Assembly: GCA_025594325.1 (NCBI GenBank)
Contig: JANHCV010000007.1
Coordinates: 1,364,001-1,428,000 of the forward strand
DNA: 64,000 bases
Source: Blastocladiella emersonii ATCC 22665
Lineage: Eukaryota > Fungi > Blastocladiomycota
Direction: 5' to 3'
Below the pieces are notes generated by a model. That model did no database searches, had not been told where the DNA came from, and was given only the letters and a program-made list of their open reading frames with translations. Positions 19,212 to 25,980 of this stretch are shown piece after piece. The position numbers and the translations under genes are program-made. Each line of letters opens with the position of its first letter. The first letter of the stretch is position 1.

Positions 19212-22200
19212 ATGACCACCACCATGGATCTGCCCGAAACCAGCACCACCAGCACCTCGACCGCGCCGCTCCGCCTGCGCCTCGCCGACGTGCCGCTCGA
19301 CCACGTCGTGCTGTTCCCCGACTCGGCCCAGGTCCATCGCCTCCTCACCCTGCCGGCCTCGCCGTCGTCGTCTGGCGCCACGATTTCGGTCGACGAGGAC
19401 GATGCCTCGTCCGCGACGTCCGCGGACGACGCCAAGTCTGCGCTCGCCAACACCAGCGGCTCGTCGGCGTCGTCGGCCGTGTCGACCGTGACGCTCCGCC
19501 TCACCGGCATCACCGCGGCCGTCGACCTGGACACGCTTCGGTACGGACGCATCATTGACGGGTCAGCTTGAACCTTCCCTCACACCGCTTACATCTAGTC
19601 TCGAGCCCGTCAACGATGGCTCGACGGACGACCTGATCCTCCCCGAGGTCGTCGCCAAGCGCTTCGTCGCTCCCGAGCCCGAGCCCGAGCCCAAGGTCGC
19701 CGACACGGCCGCCGACACGCACCGCACCCTCACCACGTCCAAGAAGACCGTCGCCAGCGGCGCCCGCAAGCTCCTGGCCGAGCGCGACACGCTGCGCGCC
19801 AAGATCGACATCCTCGAGGCCAACCTCAAGGCCCATACCTCGCCGGCTCCCTCTGCCGTTTCGGCCGACGGCACGCATGCCGCTGCGCTGCCCAACTTCG
19901 AGGACGCGACGCGCTTCATTGACCAGACCATGGCCGTCATCCTCGCCGCCCGCGAGCGCCTCGCCGAGATCGACGACGCCCTCGCCGACCTGCACGACGA
20001 GGAGGCCGAGCTCATCAAGGAGCTCGCCGCCCTCGACCTCGCCGCCAAACCGGCGCCCCGCGCCGTGCCCGCCTTTGCCACCGTGCCGTCGACCGCGCAC
20101 TCCGACCCCGCCAAGTTTGACGTCGAGATCACCATCGCTGTGCCCGCGTCCGCTGAGCCGGCCTCGTTCAACCTCACCTACGGTACGCCCGCCCAATCAC
20201 CCTCCACTAGAAGAGCTTCGCTGACCGCTATCGCCCCGACTTGGTAGACATCTCCAAGGGCGTAGCGTGGTGGCCCGACTACCTGCTCGAGATCACGTCG
20301 CCGCCCGCCGACTCGCCCAACCCGGAGGCCGCCACTGCCCGCCTCACCTTCACCGCCAACGTCCGCCAGTGCACCGGCGAGAACTGGACCGGCTGCCCGA
20401 TTGACATTGCCGTCTCGTCCATGGCCAAGCCGGCGCCGCCGCCCGCCCCGTTCACCAACACCACCCCGTTCGGTGCTGCGCAGCCCGCCCCTACTTCGGC
20501 CCCCGCCTCGAACACCCTGACCGAGCAGGGCGTCCTGTTCGGCGCTGCGCGTCCCGCCCCCGTTCCGCCGCCCGTTTCGAGCATCCTGCCCGGCTTCGGC
20601 ATGCAGGGCGTCCCGTTCGGCGCCGCGCCTACTCAGGCGACTGCCGGCTTCGGTTCGGCCACGGCGCCCGCTCGAGCGACCGGGTTCACGCTCGGCGGCG
20701 CCCCCGCCTCGTCGCCCGCGTCCGGCGGCTCGGTGTTCGGCGGCGCGCCCGCTACGTCCTCGCCGTTAGGTGCCTCCTCGAGCGCCACCACCACCACCAC
20801 CACGCCCGCGTTCGGCAGCTCGGCGTTTGGCGCGCCCGTCACCACCACGGCGTTCAGCACGCTCGGGACCGCCGCGCCTGCGCCGACGGCGTTTGGCGCG
20901 CCCACGAAGACAGCGTTTGGCGCGTCCACGACGACGGCGTTTGGAGCGCCCGCGCCGATGGCGCCTTCTGCGCCGTTCAACGGGTATCAAGTCTACGGCA
21001 CGTACGAAGCGGGGAACTTCATGGCCAAGGCCGCCGATCCTCGCTTCGCGGACAAGAGCCCCGAGGAGGAGCACGTCGAGTTCATCGAGGCCGCCAAGAC
21101 CAAGAAGGCGTACGTTGCTCGTCCACGTTGGGCAGGCGGTCAACGTGAAACTGACTTGACTCCCTCCAAATACTAGCGCGCTCGTCGCTTCGCTCGCCGC
21201 GCCCCCGTTCGTGCCCAAGTCGCTCTCGCCGTTCGGCGGCTCCATCAACAACGTCGGCGCGAGCGTCCCCGCTGTCGCCTCGCCGTTCGGCGCGTCGGCC
21301 CCGACCTCGACCTCAACCACCGCCACTCAGCCCGCCTCGACGACCGCCGCGACCGTGGCTCCCGCCGCCACCACCTCGACCCCGTTCAGCGCCTTCGCCG
21401 CGGCCCCCGGCCCGACCTTTGGCTCGATCGCGGCCGCCGCCACCCCGTCGTCCGTGGCGGCCGCTCAGCAGGCCCTCACTGCCGGCGCCCCCGCCTTTGG
21501 CGCCGCGCCCAGCACGTTCGGCAGCTCGACCGCCACGGGCACGGCCGCGGCTGCGCAGCCGTCGGCGTTCGGCAGCTCGAGCTCGACCGCCGCAGGCACG
21601 GCCGCGCCGCCGTTGGCGTTCGGCAGCTCGACGGGCTCCGAGCCCAGCAGCTTCACCTTCGGCAAGCCAAGTACGGCCGCGGCGCCGCCCGCGTTCGGCA
21701 CCACTTCTACTCTCGGGTGGACCCCGGGCGCGACCGGGTTCGGGTCGTCTACGAGTGGCGTGTTCGGCAACACCAACACGGGCGGCGCGTTCGGCAGCGC
21801 CAGCGCTGCAGCGGCCAAGCCGGCCGCGTCGACGAGTCTCTTCGGTACGGCGCCCACGGCCGCGGCCGCGGTCCCGAGCCTGTTCGGCACCATCGCCTCG
21901 GAGCACGTTCCCGCCTCGGTGGCGCCCGCGACCAACACCGCGGCGTTCGGCTCCGCCGCGCCGCCGCCCGCCGCGGGGTTCGGCGGCTCGTTCAACCTGT
22001 TCGGCAGCCCGCCCAAGTTCACGCGCGGTGAGGAGTTCGGCTTCTTCAGCGACCCGGCGGTCCCGCTCACGCTGCGCGACGTGGTCGGCCCGCCGATGCG
22101 CGAGCGCGCGTGGGCCGCGCAGGTCTACGCGTCGCAGCAGCCGGCGTTCGCCACGACTGCGTCGTGGCCCGGTGTCATGCGCCCGATGCGCGTGCGGGTC

Positions 22201-23126
22201 GAGGCCCATGGCGGAATCACGTCGTCGGATCTCGCGGTCATGTCGCTCGTCGTCGACCGCATCGAGCTCGCGGCCGTTCAGCTGTGCCATGTTGCTGTGA
22301 TCGCCGAGGCGAGTACCGGCGCCCGCGCCCACCGCATGCTCCGCGCTGTCGTCCCCGCCGACGAGCAGTTCCCCGCGGGCCAGTGCCGCGTCGTCGTCGA
22401 CGGCGAGTCGCTTGGGTTTGTCACGAACCCGGTACGCTTTCTTCGCTCACTTGCACGTCGCCGCTCAGACACTGACCCGCCCCAACCTGCATGTAGCCCT
22501 TTCTCCCCGGCCAGCACTGCACGTGGGACCTGGGCGCCGACGACGCGGTGCTCGTTTCGTCCGTGACCCTGACGACGGACCTGACGCCCAAAGCGGACCC
22601 CGGTCTCCTCGCGCGGCTGCTCGCCAGCCGGTCCGAGGGCAAGGACGCGGTGCTGATGCAGTACACGCGGAAGTTCGCCGTGTACAACGCGCGCGCCGCG
22701 CCCATCGTCGTGCGCGCCGCCATCGGCCTGTACGCGCGGCCCATCTCGGACACGTCGGTGCTCGAGGTCCCGACGCTCGAGTCGCCCAAGCCCTGCCCGC
22801 TCAAAAAGCGCGACGACCGCGGCGTCGACCCGATCGCCGTTCTTACGGGAATGGCCGGCGATCTCGGGCTCAGCATGGTCCACCCGCAGGTCCGGTTCGG
22901 CGGCACCGTCAAGGCGCTCCCGTACGCGACGCCGATCTGGGACGCGGCGGTCGAGACGGCCGAAGGCGCCCGCGTCAAGGAGTGGCTCGCGCAGCAGGAT
23001 AACGCCGTGTCGCGTACCGTCTACTACGCGGGCGTCGTCCCGCCTGCGACCAAGACGGTCGACCGCAAGCTCACGTACACGGTCGCGCAGACGGCGATGG
23101 GCAAGGCTAAGGCCAAGGATGAGTGA
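19212..23126 (+). CDS. DUF4140/DUF4139-family protein with a large inserted FG-repeat (nucleoporin-like) region; introns 19541-19598, 20183-20247, 21110-21176, 22432-22496
   Basis: N-terminal VVLFPDSAQVHR and LTGITAAVDLDTLR (DUF4140-like), then a coiled coil. AWWPDY and TANVRQCTGENW (DUF4139 start); FPAGQCRVVVDG..GF and PGQHCTWDLGAD (DUF4139 end). All four splice junctions are in frame. Confidence 0.75.
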
Positions 23127-23290: not shown

Positions 23291-25980
23291 CTAGTGAGCA
23301 GCCGGCGCAATCTGCGGCTGGTTGACAACGACCACAGTCTCGAGCGGCGCGCCGTCGTGGCGGATCGCGCCCACATCGTCCTCTTCGTCCCCGTCGGCCG
23401 CCACGTTCTCCTCGTCCTCGTCCGTCGCGGCAGCAGCGCGCGGGCCGCCCCACGTCCGCTGGCGGACGGTCAAGAAGCTATAGAGCAAGATGGAGATCAT
23501 GAAGAAGGGGTTGAAGAAGTAGTAGGCGGGGAAGACGAGGACGGCCTTGAGCCGCTTCTCGAGCACGGCCCACACGGTGACGAAGAGCCAGTTCGGGATG
23601 ATGACGATGAGCAGCCACACGAGGTAGTCCCACTTGAACGTCGAGTAGTCGAAGATGAGGTTGAAGAGCAGCTCGACCAGCAGGATGTAGGTGATGGCGC
23701 CGCCGACCTTGAGGATCTGGAAGAACTTGGTCAGCATCAGCAGCGGGTACTTGCGCCAGAACAGCGGCGTGCACAGCATGATGAGCTCGTTGGTGATGGT
23801 GCCCAGGAACCACCGCCGCCGCTGCCGCAGCAGGTTGTTGAAGTTGCTGGGCGCCTCGGTCTTGCACATGGCCTGCGAGTTGAACCCGAGCGTGTACGTG
23901 CCCGGCCGCTCCATCAGCAGGTGCGTCATGTACCGGTCCTCGCCCAGGTACCGCTGCGCAAAGTCGAACGTCGACGCGATCTCGCGCTGGTAAAAGTAGT
24001 CCTGCGCAACGTCGAGCAGCACCGGGTACTTGAACATGGTCAGGACACCCGGGAGACACGTTACGGCGCCCATGAGGGCCTCGGCGTTGCGGAAGATCAT
24101 GGACTCGATGTACTCGGCGTCCTGCATGATGCGCCAGAAGTTGTAGCAGTCCTCGTTGCGGCTGACCACCATGCCCGTGACGGCGCGCGTCTGCGGCCGC
24201 CGCTGCACCTCGGCCACGAGCTGCGACACCGTGTCGGGCATGATCGCCGTGTCCGAGTCCATGAACAGAATGTACGGGTCCTCGACGTGGCCCTCGTTCT
24301 CGAGCTCCTGCTGCAGCCGCTCGAACATGTTGCGCTGCGTGCCCAGCTTGCCCGAGTGCTCGAACCGGCACACCGTGATCTGCGTCGACCGGTACTCGAG
24401 CGTGTACGCGTCGGGACAGTCCTCGGCCGTGAAGTCGAGCTCAGTCCGTCGCGGGCGGTTCTGGAAGACGCCGCCGTTACCGAGATTGAGCGCCGAGTCG
24501 CCCGCGAGCGACGCCGAGTATAGGCCGTCTGCGCCGCCGTCGAGCAGCGTAGCGTCGCCGAGATCGCCCGCCGTCATGGTCGTCGTCGGCGCCATGCTCG
24601 ACGGCCGGCTCGACAACGGCGTGAACTGGAGCGGCGGCGTGCTGGACCGCTGCGGGACACTGGCGACGGACCGAATTGACCCGGCGGCCGTCACGATCTG
24701 GTCGAACCCGTTGTACTTTTGCGACTTGCAGCCCATACGGCCGAGGACCGCCTTGTGGCTGAGGTTGGACGGGTCAATGTCGTCTTCAACCGCCGCTGTT
24801 GCCGCGGCAGCCTGCGGCGCGCGCCAGCGGAGCTCGGAGAACCGTTTCGCGACCGACTCGGAGCGCAGCGGGACGCCCGTCATGAGCCGGCACAGGGTGA
24901 AGAACTGCTGCTCGACGTCGTAGTTGTCGAACCCGACGAAGACGCGGAGCCGCGGGTAGTCGGACGCGGCGACGCCGTTGATGGCGCCCATCAGGTTCGG
25001 CAGCGGCTCGTTGTACGTCGGGATCAGCACGTAGACGAGTGGGAGCCCGTTCTCGGCGGCGCCGGACACCGCCGCGGGGGTGTGCACGGGCGCCGGCGGC
25101 TCGTCGCTCACGCCCGCGGGAGGAAGAAGCAGGCCCTGCGAGCGGAGGAACGCGTCCTTGCGCTCGTGAAAGTCCTTGCGCGCGCCGCGCGCGTACAGCC
25201 AGTCGCTCGATAGCTTGATGATGGCTAGGTGATGGGGAATGGGCAGGGACGCGGTGGTGAGCAAACGGTCGCGCCCGATCGCATCAGCCCGTGACGCTCG
25301 CGAACACAGCGCTGAAACTGAGCCACGCGAAGCGGTGTCCCGTTTCAGCACTCGAGCGCGACGCGTGAAAGCAAGCGGGGGGCGACGACGACGTACCGAC
25401 CACCATGTTGACGACGACCGGGAACATGGCCATGGCCAGGAAGCAGTACATGAGCGGGTCGAGACGGTGGCGCGTCGCCTCGGCCGTGATTTTATAGAAT
25501 GACGAGCTGTACTTGGAGAACTGCAGCGTCACGACCGTGACTAGACAAGGAAGGCGCTGGCGGTGAGCGACGGGCTCGTCGTCTGGTTGGTGCAGCCGCT
25601 GCGGCCAGCGGTCCGCTCCACGACCACCGCAAGCGTTTGGGCAAGTGCGACGACGTACAGTATGTGAACGAGTCCATGAAGTGCGTGTACAGCAGAAACA
25701 TGACGACGACGAGCGCGGGCGTGGCCTTGTCGCTCCACGAGGCGTCGAGCTTGGCGCGCTTCTCGACGCCCATGCGGTAGATGTTCACGAACGACCACGA
25801 GTGGAAGACCCAGTGCGAGACCAGGTACGTCAGGATGAAGGCCAGCATCGCGTAGAACAGGATCTGCAGCGCGACGGTGCCCGCGGTCGGCAGGTTGTCG
25901 ACGGGCGCCTTGGCGAACTGCGCGCCGGCCGGGAGCGACGCCGTCGCGCCGGACAGCGGATCGGGCGAGGTCGAGTACAT
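23291..25980 (-). CDS. CHS: Chitin synthase (GT2), compact class VI/D-like type; introns in the 5' part (about 25.23-25.40 and 25.54-25.66 kb)
   Basis: LIPTYNE, FMDSD, TCLPG, LGEDRY and LLRQRRRW catalytic motifs; N- and C-terminal TM segments; no myosin or cytochrome b5 domain. Confidence 0.92.

Follow-up and report, generated by a model that had tools for sequence, protein, structure and literature searches.

A candidate FG–GLEBS-like–FG module in the variable loop of a DUF4140–DUF4139 paralog of Blastocladiella emersonii

In nucleoporins of the Nup98/Nup116 family, two blocks of phenylalanine–glycine (FG) repeats flank a short GLEBS motif, an arrangement that links the mRNA export factor Rae1/Gle2 to the principal cohesive barrier domain of the nuclear pore. 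To our knowledge, this FG–GLEBS–FG layout has not been described outside that family. A locus of Blastocladiella emersonii ATCC 22665 raises the question of whether a similar module can be carried by an unrelated anchor. The locus lies in a window of 64,000 nucleotides, the whole stretch of DNA that was analyzed (contig C19:1364001-1428000; the assembly comprises 32.65 Mb in 21 contigs), and positions given below are those of the window unless another contig is named. Its deposited product is KAI9176033.1 (hypothetical protein H9P43_006397, 1215 aa). The reading pursued here, to which we give an even chance, is that the gene is real and encodes a paralog of DUF4140/coiled-coil/DUF4139 architecture, whose loop would have grown into a module of about 510 residues, consisting of FG repeats, a GLEBS-like island of about 45 residues and further FG repeats, that docks Rae1 or Bub3. 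The case is built from one species, and solely from predictions.

Gene model and DUF4140–DUF4139 scaffold

The structure of the gene is directly supported. Five exons on the forward strand (19212-19540, 19599-20182, 20248-21109, 21177-22431 and 22497-23126) join in frame across four introns of 58, 65, 67 and 65 nt, in which every donor is GTACG and every acceptor YAG, and the frame stays open over 1219 codons without a stop or frameshift. A sequence-only reading of this DNA had proposed a single spliced five-exon protein. The deposited protein, recovered by HMMER with exon 5, agrees with it on all introns and starts at the second ATG (19224), that is, four codons downstream of 19212; the peptides that the earlier reading quoted were also all found in the sequence. 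GC content at third codon positions (GC3) is 0.86-0.93 in all exon segments, including the FG blocks, and the GC content of the introns is 0.53-0.61; the coding potential of the locus is good. Each FG block is contiguous with one half of the scaffold in a single open frame, which rules out a gene nested within an intron. Joining the first block and the island to the second block requires the removal of intron 3 alone (21110-21176; 67 nt, GTACGT..TAG), and reading through this intron brings the frame to a stop at a TAG (21174-21176). A secreted or membrane protein was considered and rejected, as no obvious signal peptide is present and the best 19-residue hydropathy window includes Asp, Arg and Glu; the FG domain would therefore face the cytosol or the nucleus. 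Other frames over the FG region (20633-22332) are open for 115-339 codons, for example at 21313-22332 on the reverse strand and 21419-22300 on the forward strand. These additional frames reflect the 75% GC content; in this genome, little can be read from an open frame by itself.

Direct support extends to the homology of the scaffold and to the position of the insert. Exon 1 (19212-19540) encodes a DUF4140-like N-terminal beta domain with a Ser/Ala/Asp-rich loop and is followed by intron 1 (19541-19598; 58 nt, GTACGG..TAG, phase 2, within an Arg codon). Exon 2 (19599-20182) encodes an antiparallel coiled-coil hairpin and the first strands of a beta sandwich. After intron 2 (20183-20247; 65 nt, GTACGC..TAG, phase 1), the first part of exon 3 (20248-20441) contains the putative DUF4139 start, from AWWPDY to QCTGENW. 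The DUF4139-like sequence resumes in the last part of exon 4 (22042-22431), where PAGQCRVVVDG stands opposite LLPGxVxVFLDG of the family, and continues across intron 4 (22432-22496; 65 nt, GTACGC..TAG, phase 0) into the C-terminal beta region of exon 5 (22497-23126), which closes with a TGA stop at 23124-23126.

The identification of these flanks as DUF4140 and DUF4139, first made from the sequence alone, held for profile–profile alignment, a shared intron and language-model features and failed at the Pfam cut-offs. PF13598 (DUF4139) scored 21.2 bits over the whole protein (E 2.7e-4, profile positions 21-62), under its cut-off of 31.8, and gave no match on the C-terminal piece 860-1215, while PF13600 (DUF4140) scored 11.8-16.8 bits, under its cut-off of 27. 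BLASTP of exon 1 against the first exon of a canonical paralog yielded E 0.001 over TVTLRLTGITAAVDLDTL. Alignment of residues 1-375 to a seven-sequence family alignment with hhalign reached a probability of 97.2% (E 2.9e-11), covering residues 228-360; the corresponding alignment of residues 860-1215 was collinear and weak (probability 22%, P 9e-4) and placed FPAGQCRVVVDG on the family motif LLPGxVxVFLDG. Among the 30 clusters nearest to residues 880-1215 by protein-language-model features, 27 were DUF4139, with the top three matches scoring 0.91-0.92 at 181-186 shared features. Furthermore, intron 1 occupies the same place and phase as the sole intron of the canonical paralog (DTLR, CG|T vs DTIR, CG|C). 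KAI9176033.1 shares with the DUF4140–DUF4139 ('MuiA-like') family the order of its elements, the W..P.Y and TGENW motifs, intron 1 and the counterpart of LLPG.V.VFLDG. Homology of the scaffold to this family is well supported, and on profile–profile, intron-position and language-model evidence the protein is a divergent DUF4139-family member, though it falls under the Pfam cut-offs.

Three canonical DUF4140–DUF4139 paralogs are encoded in the genome, all on contig C3. The fuller third paralog is H9P43_008168 (653 aa), at C3 ~427356-429303. The other two, at C3:344216-344965 on the forward strand and C3:420478-421230 on the reverse strand, both scored E 2.0e-25 (93.0 and 92.9 bits); given their near-equal scores, opposite orientation and separation of about 76 kb, this pair looks like a recent inverted segmental duplication.

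In the AlphaFold2 (AF2) model of a canonical paralog, with a mean predicted local distance difference test (pLDDT) score of 67, the chain runs from a beta N-domain through an antiparallel coiled-coil hairpin and a beta sandwich to a disordered loop (298-377), beyond which lies more beta structure. The AF2 model of KAI9176033.1 residues 16-1215 repeats this order and includes two long hairpin helices at pLDDT 80-90; its mean pLDDT of 41 makes it usable solely for the order of elements and for the disorder of the insert. Judged by this order and by the location of the insert at the disordered loop of the paralog, the FG domain replaces the variable loop of the family. As the sequence-only reading had stated, that loop is usually short: it measures about 80-90 Pro/Ala-rich residues in the canonical paralogs, and family members hold 0-3 FG, whereas the loop of KAI9176033.1 measures about 510 residues and holds 29. 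KAI9176033.1 also differs from the canonical paralogs in three additional introns and from the family in its C-terminal 209 residues, which have no detectable relative; exon 5, which encodes them, has no paralog in the genome. A Foldseek search against the PDB matched ribophorin I weakly (E 1.8e-3, TM 0.14-0.20), and the VIA-align rows corresponded to a generic coiled-coil hairpin only; with structure matches this weak, no fold relative was assigned to the scaffold. In the N-domain, a further Ser/Ala/Asp-rich loop of some 45 residues (19350-19480; residues ~45-88) has no counterpart in the canonical paralog, so loop expansion in KAI9176033.1 is not confined to the FG site.

The FG-repeat insert and its GLEBS-like island

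The statistics of the FG insert are likewise a matter of direct observation. FG block 1 (20442-20975; residues ~366-543) contains 11 FG dipeptides and FG block 2, which follows the end of the island in the first part of exon 4 (21177-22041; residues 596-876), contains 18. By exon, the counts are 11 in exon 3, 18 in exon 4 and one in exon 5, and the recount of 29 between the scaffold halves, in two blocks around the island, reproduces the number of about 29 that had been estimated by hand. Residue shuffles of the blocks produced 1.9 ± 1.3 and 2.6 ± 1.5 FG, with a maximum of 8, against the 11 and 18 seen. In the blocks as cut for this shuffle test, Gly directly follows 28 of the 38 Phe residues, most commonly in the contexts AFG, PFG, LFG, GFG and TFG. 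The median spacing between FG dipeptides is 14.5 residues, and the densest stretch holds 15 FG per 200 aa. Rich in Ala, Ser, Thr and Pro, the two blocks (~366-545 and 596-876) contain only 13 charged residues among 461 (4 in block 1 and 9 in block 2), one Trp and no Tyr. A benchmark for FG domains comprises at least 5 FG per 200 aa, few charges and Phe as almost the sole large hydrophobic residue (PMC8311347), and the insert has both this density and this composition. Its maximum of 15 FG per 200 aa is also inside the span of values listed for human NUP153, POM121 and NUP98 (PMC8311347). By composition, the insert would be expected to work like an FG domain, and in the AF2 model residues 355-969 are disordered except for one helix at about 572-594.

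Profile searches for the repeats were of limited use. PF13634 (Nucleoporin_FG) scored 14-21.6 bits at the locus (18.8 bits for block 1), under its gathering cut-off of 32.2. In a search of the organism's own genome with this profile, the locus ranked first at 21.6 bits; since no B. emersonii locus reached the cut-off, the test has little power here. The second-best match in the genome was a 791-aa frame on contig C1 (~1123414-1125789, forward strand), an RS-domain-like (arginine/serine) and seemingly non-pore FG protein, in which an Arg/Ser-rich, (DR)n N-terminal half precedes about 30 near-regular AAGGFGAP repeats.

The origin of the insert was addressed within the same genome. When searched as protein and as DNA, the insert matched its own locus alone, with no donor, copy or relative. 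Its Ala/Ser/Thr/Pro-rich spacers also contrast with the Gly/Gln-rich FG domain of the Nup98 homolog of B. emersonii, so the earlier proposal that a Nup98-type module had been transplanted into this protein found no support. Two tandem arrays with about 80% match, one of 24 nt × 3.8 at 20873-20963 in block 1 and one of 51 nt × 2.3 at 21515-21632 in block 2, show that part of the FG domain grew through local duplication. Growth in place is a possible origin, as is an old capture followed by divergence. Additionally, Phe, which is encoded by TTY codons, makes up 8% of a stretch with 75% GC; this opposes the mutational bias and would argue for selection on Phe.

Between the two blocks lies the GLEBS-like island (20976-21109; residues 544-588). 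For comparison, the organism's own Nup98/Nup116/Nup145N homolog (C15 ~508415-511663, reverse strand) has the GLEBS YLSVCAMPQYSNYSADELRLQDYAMNKK, a C-terminal pore-targeting domain and an FG domain with 40 FG in 439 residues. When the 30-residue core of this GLEBS was slid without gaps along KAI9176033.1 and scored with BLOSUM62, the maximum fell at residues 557-586 (NFMAKAADPRFADKSPEEEHVEFIEAAKTK; 21015-21104). Shuffled cores attained the score of 27 at a rate of 1% over the full-length protein, and shuffled islands at a rate of 0.1%. Residues 557-586 were also the best non-self match among approximately 271,000 six-frame positions of the window and the fetched loci, a set that includes non-coding frames and hence offers a smaller effective background; the next matches scored 23 and 22. 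In Nup98 and Nup116, E201/E202 and E154/E155, respectively, form salt bridges to Rae1 arginines and are required for binding (PMC3783196), and E573/E574 of the island (21063-21068) align with this Glu pair. The likeness to the motif is therefore directly supported, and the island resembles a GLEBS in a way that survives testing. Of the earlier claim that a GLEBS core sits between the FG blocks, what stood was the top match to the own core, the Glu-Glu pair and the prediction of a complex with Rae1 described below, while the curated profile PF21240 (Nup98_GLEBS) remained silent.

Predicted docking on Rae1 and competing explanations

The Rae1/Gle2 ortholog of B. emersonii lies at C17:1145540-1148554 on the reverse strand (exons 2502-2431, 2356-1728 and 1642-1282 of that stretch; ~354 aa), and its best PDB match is Rae1, 'mRNA export factor' (E 2e-55). 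It was located through a single genome-wide match to the pattern FWDKD, and its introns start with GTGCGT and GTACGT. Both GLEBS-binding arginines are retained, as R135 and R179 of the exon-2 chain. We place R135, within an 'ER[VC]Y' motif, at human R172 and R179 at human R216.

For the complex prediction, KAI9176033.1 residues 525-600 were combined with the two large Rae1 exons as separate chains, with Rae1 as the sole partner. The interaction prediction score from aligned errors (ipSAE), a measure of model confidence, was 0.93, 0.93 and 0.94 for the island with Rae1, and the highest of the three controls gave 0.01; at least 80% of the contacts agree between runs, and the partner had a pLDDT of 67 or more. 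Calibration of the method placed 51 of 78 solved complexes and 2 of 108 mismatched pairs at or above the mark. Residues 544-580 are predicted to touch the propeller blade after blade along its top-face loops, with contact pairs that include R135-E574 and R95-E573, and this predicted list of contacts is what a GLEBS should give. The pass does not tell which member of the Rae1/Bub3-type family would bind.

From these results we infer the binding, cellular location and function of KAI9176033.1. The folded scaffold would anchor or oligomerize the protein; the island would form a hairpin spanning the top of the seven-bladed Rae1/Gle2 propeller, or that of the paralog Bub3, and be held there by the conserved Glu-Glu to Arg contacts; and the FG blocks would make multivalent, cohesive contacts with nuclear transport receptors. 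The protein would then behave like the N-terminal half of Nup98/Nup116 on a different anchor. Three possibilities offered when the module was first noticed are speculation: that it binds karyopherins, that it forms a gel, and that it acts at the pore or the flagellar base.

The comparison with known systems places the protein between several groups. As in Nup98/Nup116, two charge-poor FG blocks surround a short non-FG island with a Glu-Glu pair and a predicted position on top of the Rae1 propeller, and the FG density (29 in about 460 residues) is within the range of human nucleoporins (PMC8311347). Unlike Nup98/Nup116, KAI9176033.1 lacks the autoproteolytic C-terminal domain (no Pfam match), and its module sits in the loop of a DUF4139 scaffold instead of at the N-terminus; the island is missed by PF21240 and its hairpin is shorter. 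Because the C-terminal domain is absent and PF21240 failed, the protein is not a member of the Nup98 family. Non-nucleoporin FG proteins such as the GLH helicases of C. elegans P granules (PMC8311347) likewise combine a foreign folded domain with FG repeats at nucleoporin density. However, those listed in that source have no GLEBS-like island, and in KAI9176033.1 the repeats form an internal loop and not a tail.

A number of results weigh against the reading of a Rae1/Bub3-docking FG module. At E ≤ 10, PF21240 matched neither the whole protein nor excised pieces of 41 and 60 residues; in the positive control, the organism's own Nup98 GLEBS scored 18.9 bits, itself under the 27-bit cut-off, and weak PF21240 matches are hidden by the HMMER filters. 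BLASTP of the island against the own Nup98 GLEBS returned nothing at E ≤ 100, and phmmer against PDB sequences returned nothing at E ≤ 10. Relative to the consensus 'EELR', the island has Glu in place of Leu and His in place of Arg, and its hairpin is several residues shorter. The prediction job was itself unlike its calibration set, having the propeller divided between two chains and a disordered peptide as the third, and the pass may reflect the model's memory of the solved Rae1–Nup98 complex, which would speak for likeness and not for binding. Additionally, the KAI9176033.1 gene model was produced by ab initio predictors in funannotate (PMC9730499), and it therefore constitutes a second prediction, not transcript evidence. 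A look-up of RNA runs for the locus returned none. As FG-rich low-complexity sequence also occurs on non-pore B. emersonii proteins, FG repeats alone are weak evidence for a role at the pore.

The searches for orthologs point in the same direction. HMMER with exon 5 against 1.84 billion representative proteins returned the self match only, as did a word search with residues 1-370; a word search with exon 4 residues 280-418 and two metagenome scans with both flanks found no ortholog. KAI9176033.1 is most likely a lineage-restricted, fast-evolving DUF4140–DUF4139 paralog.

The main rival account is one in which the gene and its FG loop are real but the loop is a low-complexity spacer expanded by replication slippage in GC-rich DNA, the likeness to GLEBS is coincidental and there is no role with Rae1 or at the pore. 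We regard this account as a serious competitor, albeit a somewhat doubtful one. The two local tandem arrays show growth by duplication, the canonical paralogs already hold a Pro/Ala-rich loop of 80-90 residues at the site, the RS-domain protein with its roughly 30 GGFG repeats demonstrates that FG-type low complexity occurs elsewhere in the proteome, the protein is an orphan that shows no evidence of being conserved, and PF21240, BLASTP and the PDB search with phmmer were all negative. However, slippage does not readily explain why Phe reaches 8% in DNA of 75% GC, opposing the mutational bias, nor why 28 of 38 Phe precede Gly at a regular spacing of about 15 residues. A coincidental likeness also sits poorly with an island that is the best non-self match to the own GLEBS in approximately 271,000 positions and falls exactly between the FG blocks, or with a complex score of 0.93 against 0.01 in the controls, obtained with the expected Arg-Glu contact.

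A second alternative accepts the island as a genuine GLEBS-type motif and changes its partner: it would bind Bub3 and not Rae1, and the protein would be a condensate-forming Bub3 chaperone at the spindle or kinetochore, similar to BuGZ/ZNF207. BuGZ/ZNF207, Bub1 and BubR1 resemble the island in that a GLEBS motif within disordered sequence outside a nucleoporin docks a propeller of the Rae1/Bub3 type, and the GLEBS of BuGZ lies inside a long disordered region. The core of the island, S-x-E-E-x-[RH]-x-E, presumably fits the Bub1-type consensus as well as the Nup98-type, and the complex pass is blind to which family member binds. The GLEBS motifs of Bub1, BubR1/Mad3 and BuGZ are described as binding Bub3, the Rae1 paralog (for example PMC2172680 and PMC9147866). 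The surroundings of the motif speak against this alternative and leave it improbable in our judgment: the dense FG repeats on both sides of the island are the arrangement of Nup98/Nup116 and are foreign to Bub1 and BuGZ, and the Bub3-binding motifs of BuGZ, Bub1 and BubR1 lack dense FG flanks and accompany zinc fingers, or tetratricopeptide repeats (TPR) and a kinase, as folded parts.

It is very improbable that the locus is mis-modelled or silent, for example a decaying paralog whose long frames in 70-75% GC mimic one protein: the annotation is ab initio, further frames remain open over some 300 codons of the FG region and both flanking domains score below the Pfam cut-offs, but the contrast in GC3 between exons in the chosen frame and introns, the GTACG/YAG form of all four introns, which recurs in the paralog intron and in one Rae1 intron, the 1219 codons without a stop or frameshift, and the collinearity of the scaffold halves with the family, with intron 1 common to the canonical paralog, all stand against it.

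Implications and neighboring sequence

If the reading of a Rae1/Bub3-docking FG module within a DUF4139 scaffold were correct, the FG–GLEBS–FG module could work or evolve independently of the Nup98 anchor. The protein would be a naturally occurring system in which to see what an FG domain equipped with a Rae1 site does apart from Nup98, and it would offer the first eukaryotic functional handle on the uncharacterized DUF4139 family. A more far-reaching claim, which we hold to be rather unlikely at present, is that KAI9176033.1 is a second Rae1-docking FG protein independent of Nup98, in which an FG–GLEBS–FG cassette was grown or captured in an unrelated DUF4139 loop, and that it serves this lineage specifically as a nucleoporin-like factor, either at the pore or in RNA bodies around the nucleus. 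The Nup98 N-terminal module would in that case be portable between anchors. The locus also carries a warning for annotation: curated profiles of short motifs, such as PF21240, miss motifs that are divergent yet structurally recognizable.

Downstream, a chitin synthase gene on the reverse strand (23291-25351) lies tail to tail with the FG gene, the two stop codons being separated by an AT-richer spacer of about 165 nt with 45% GC.

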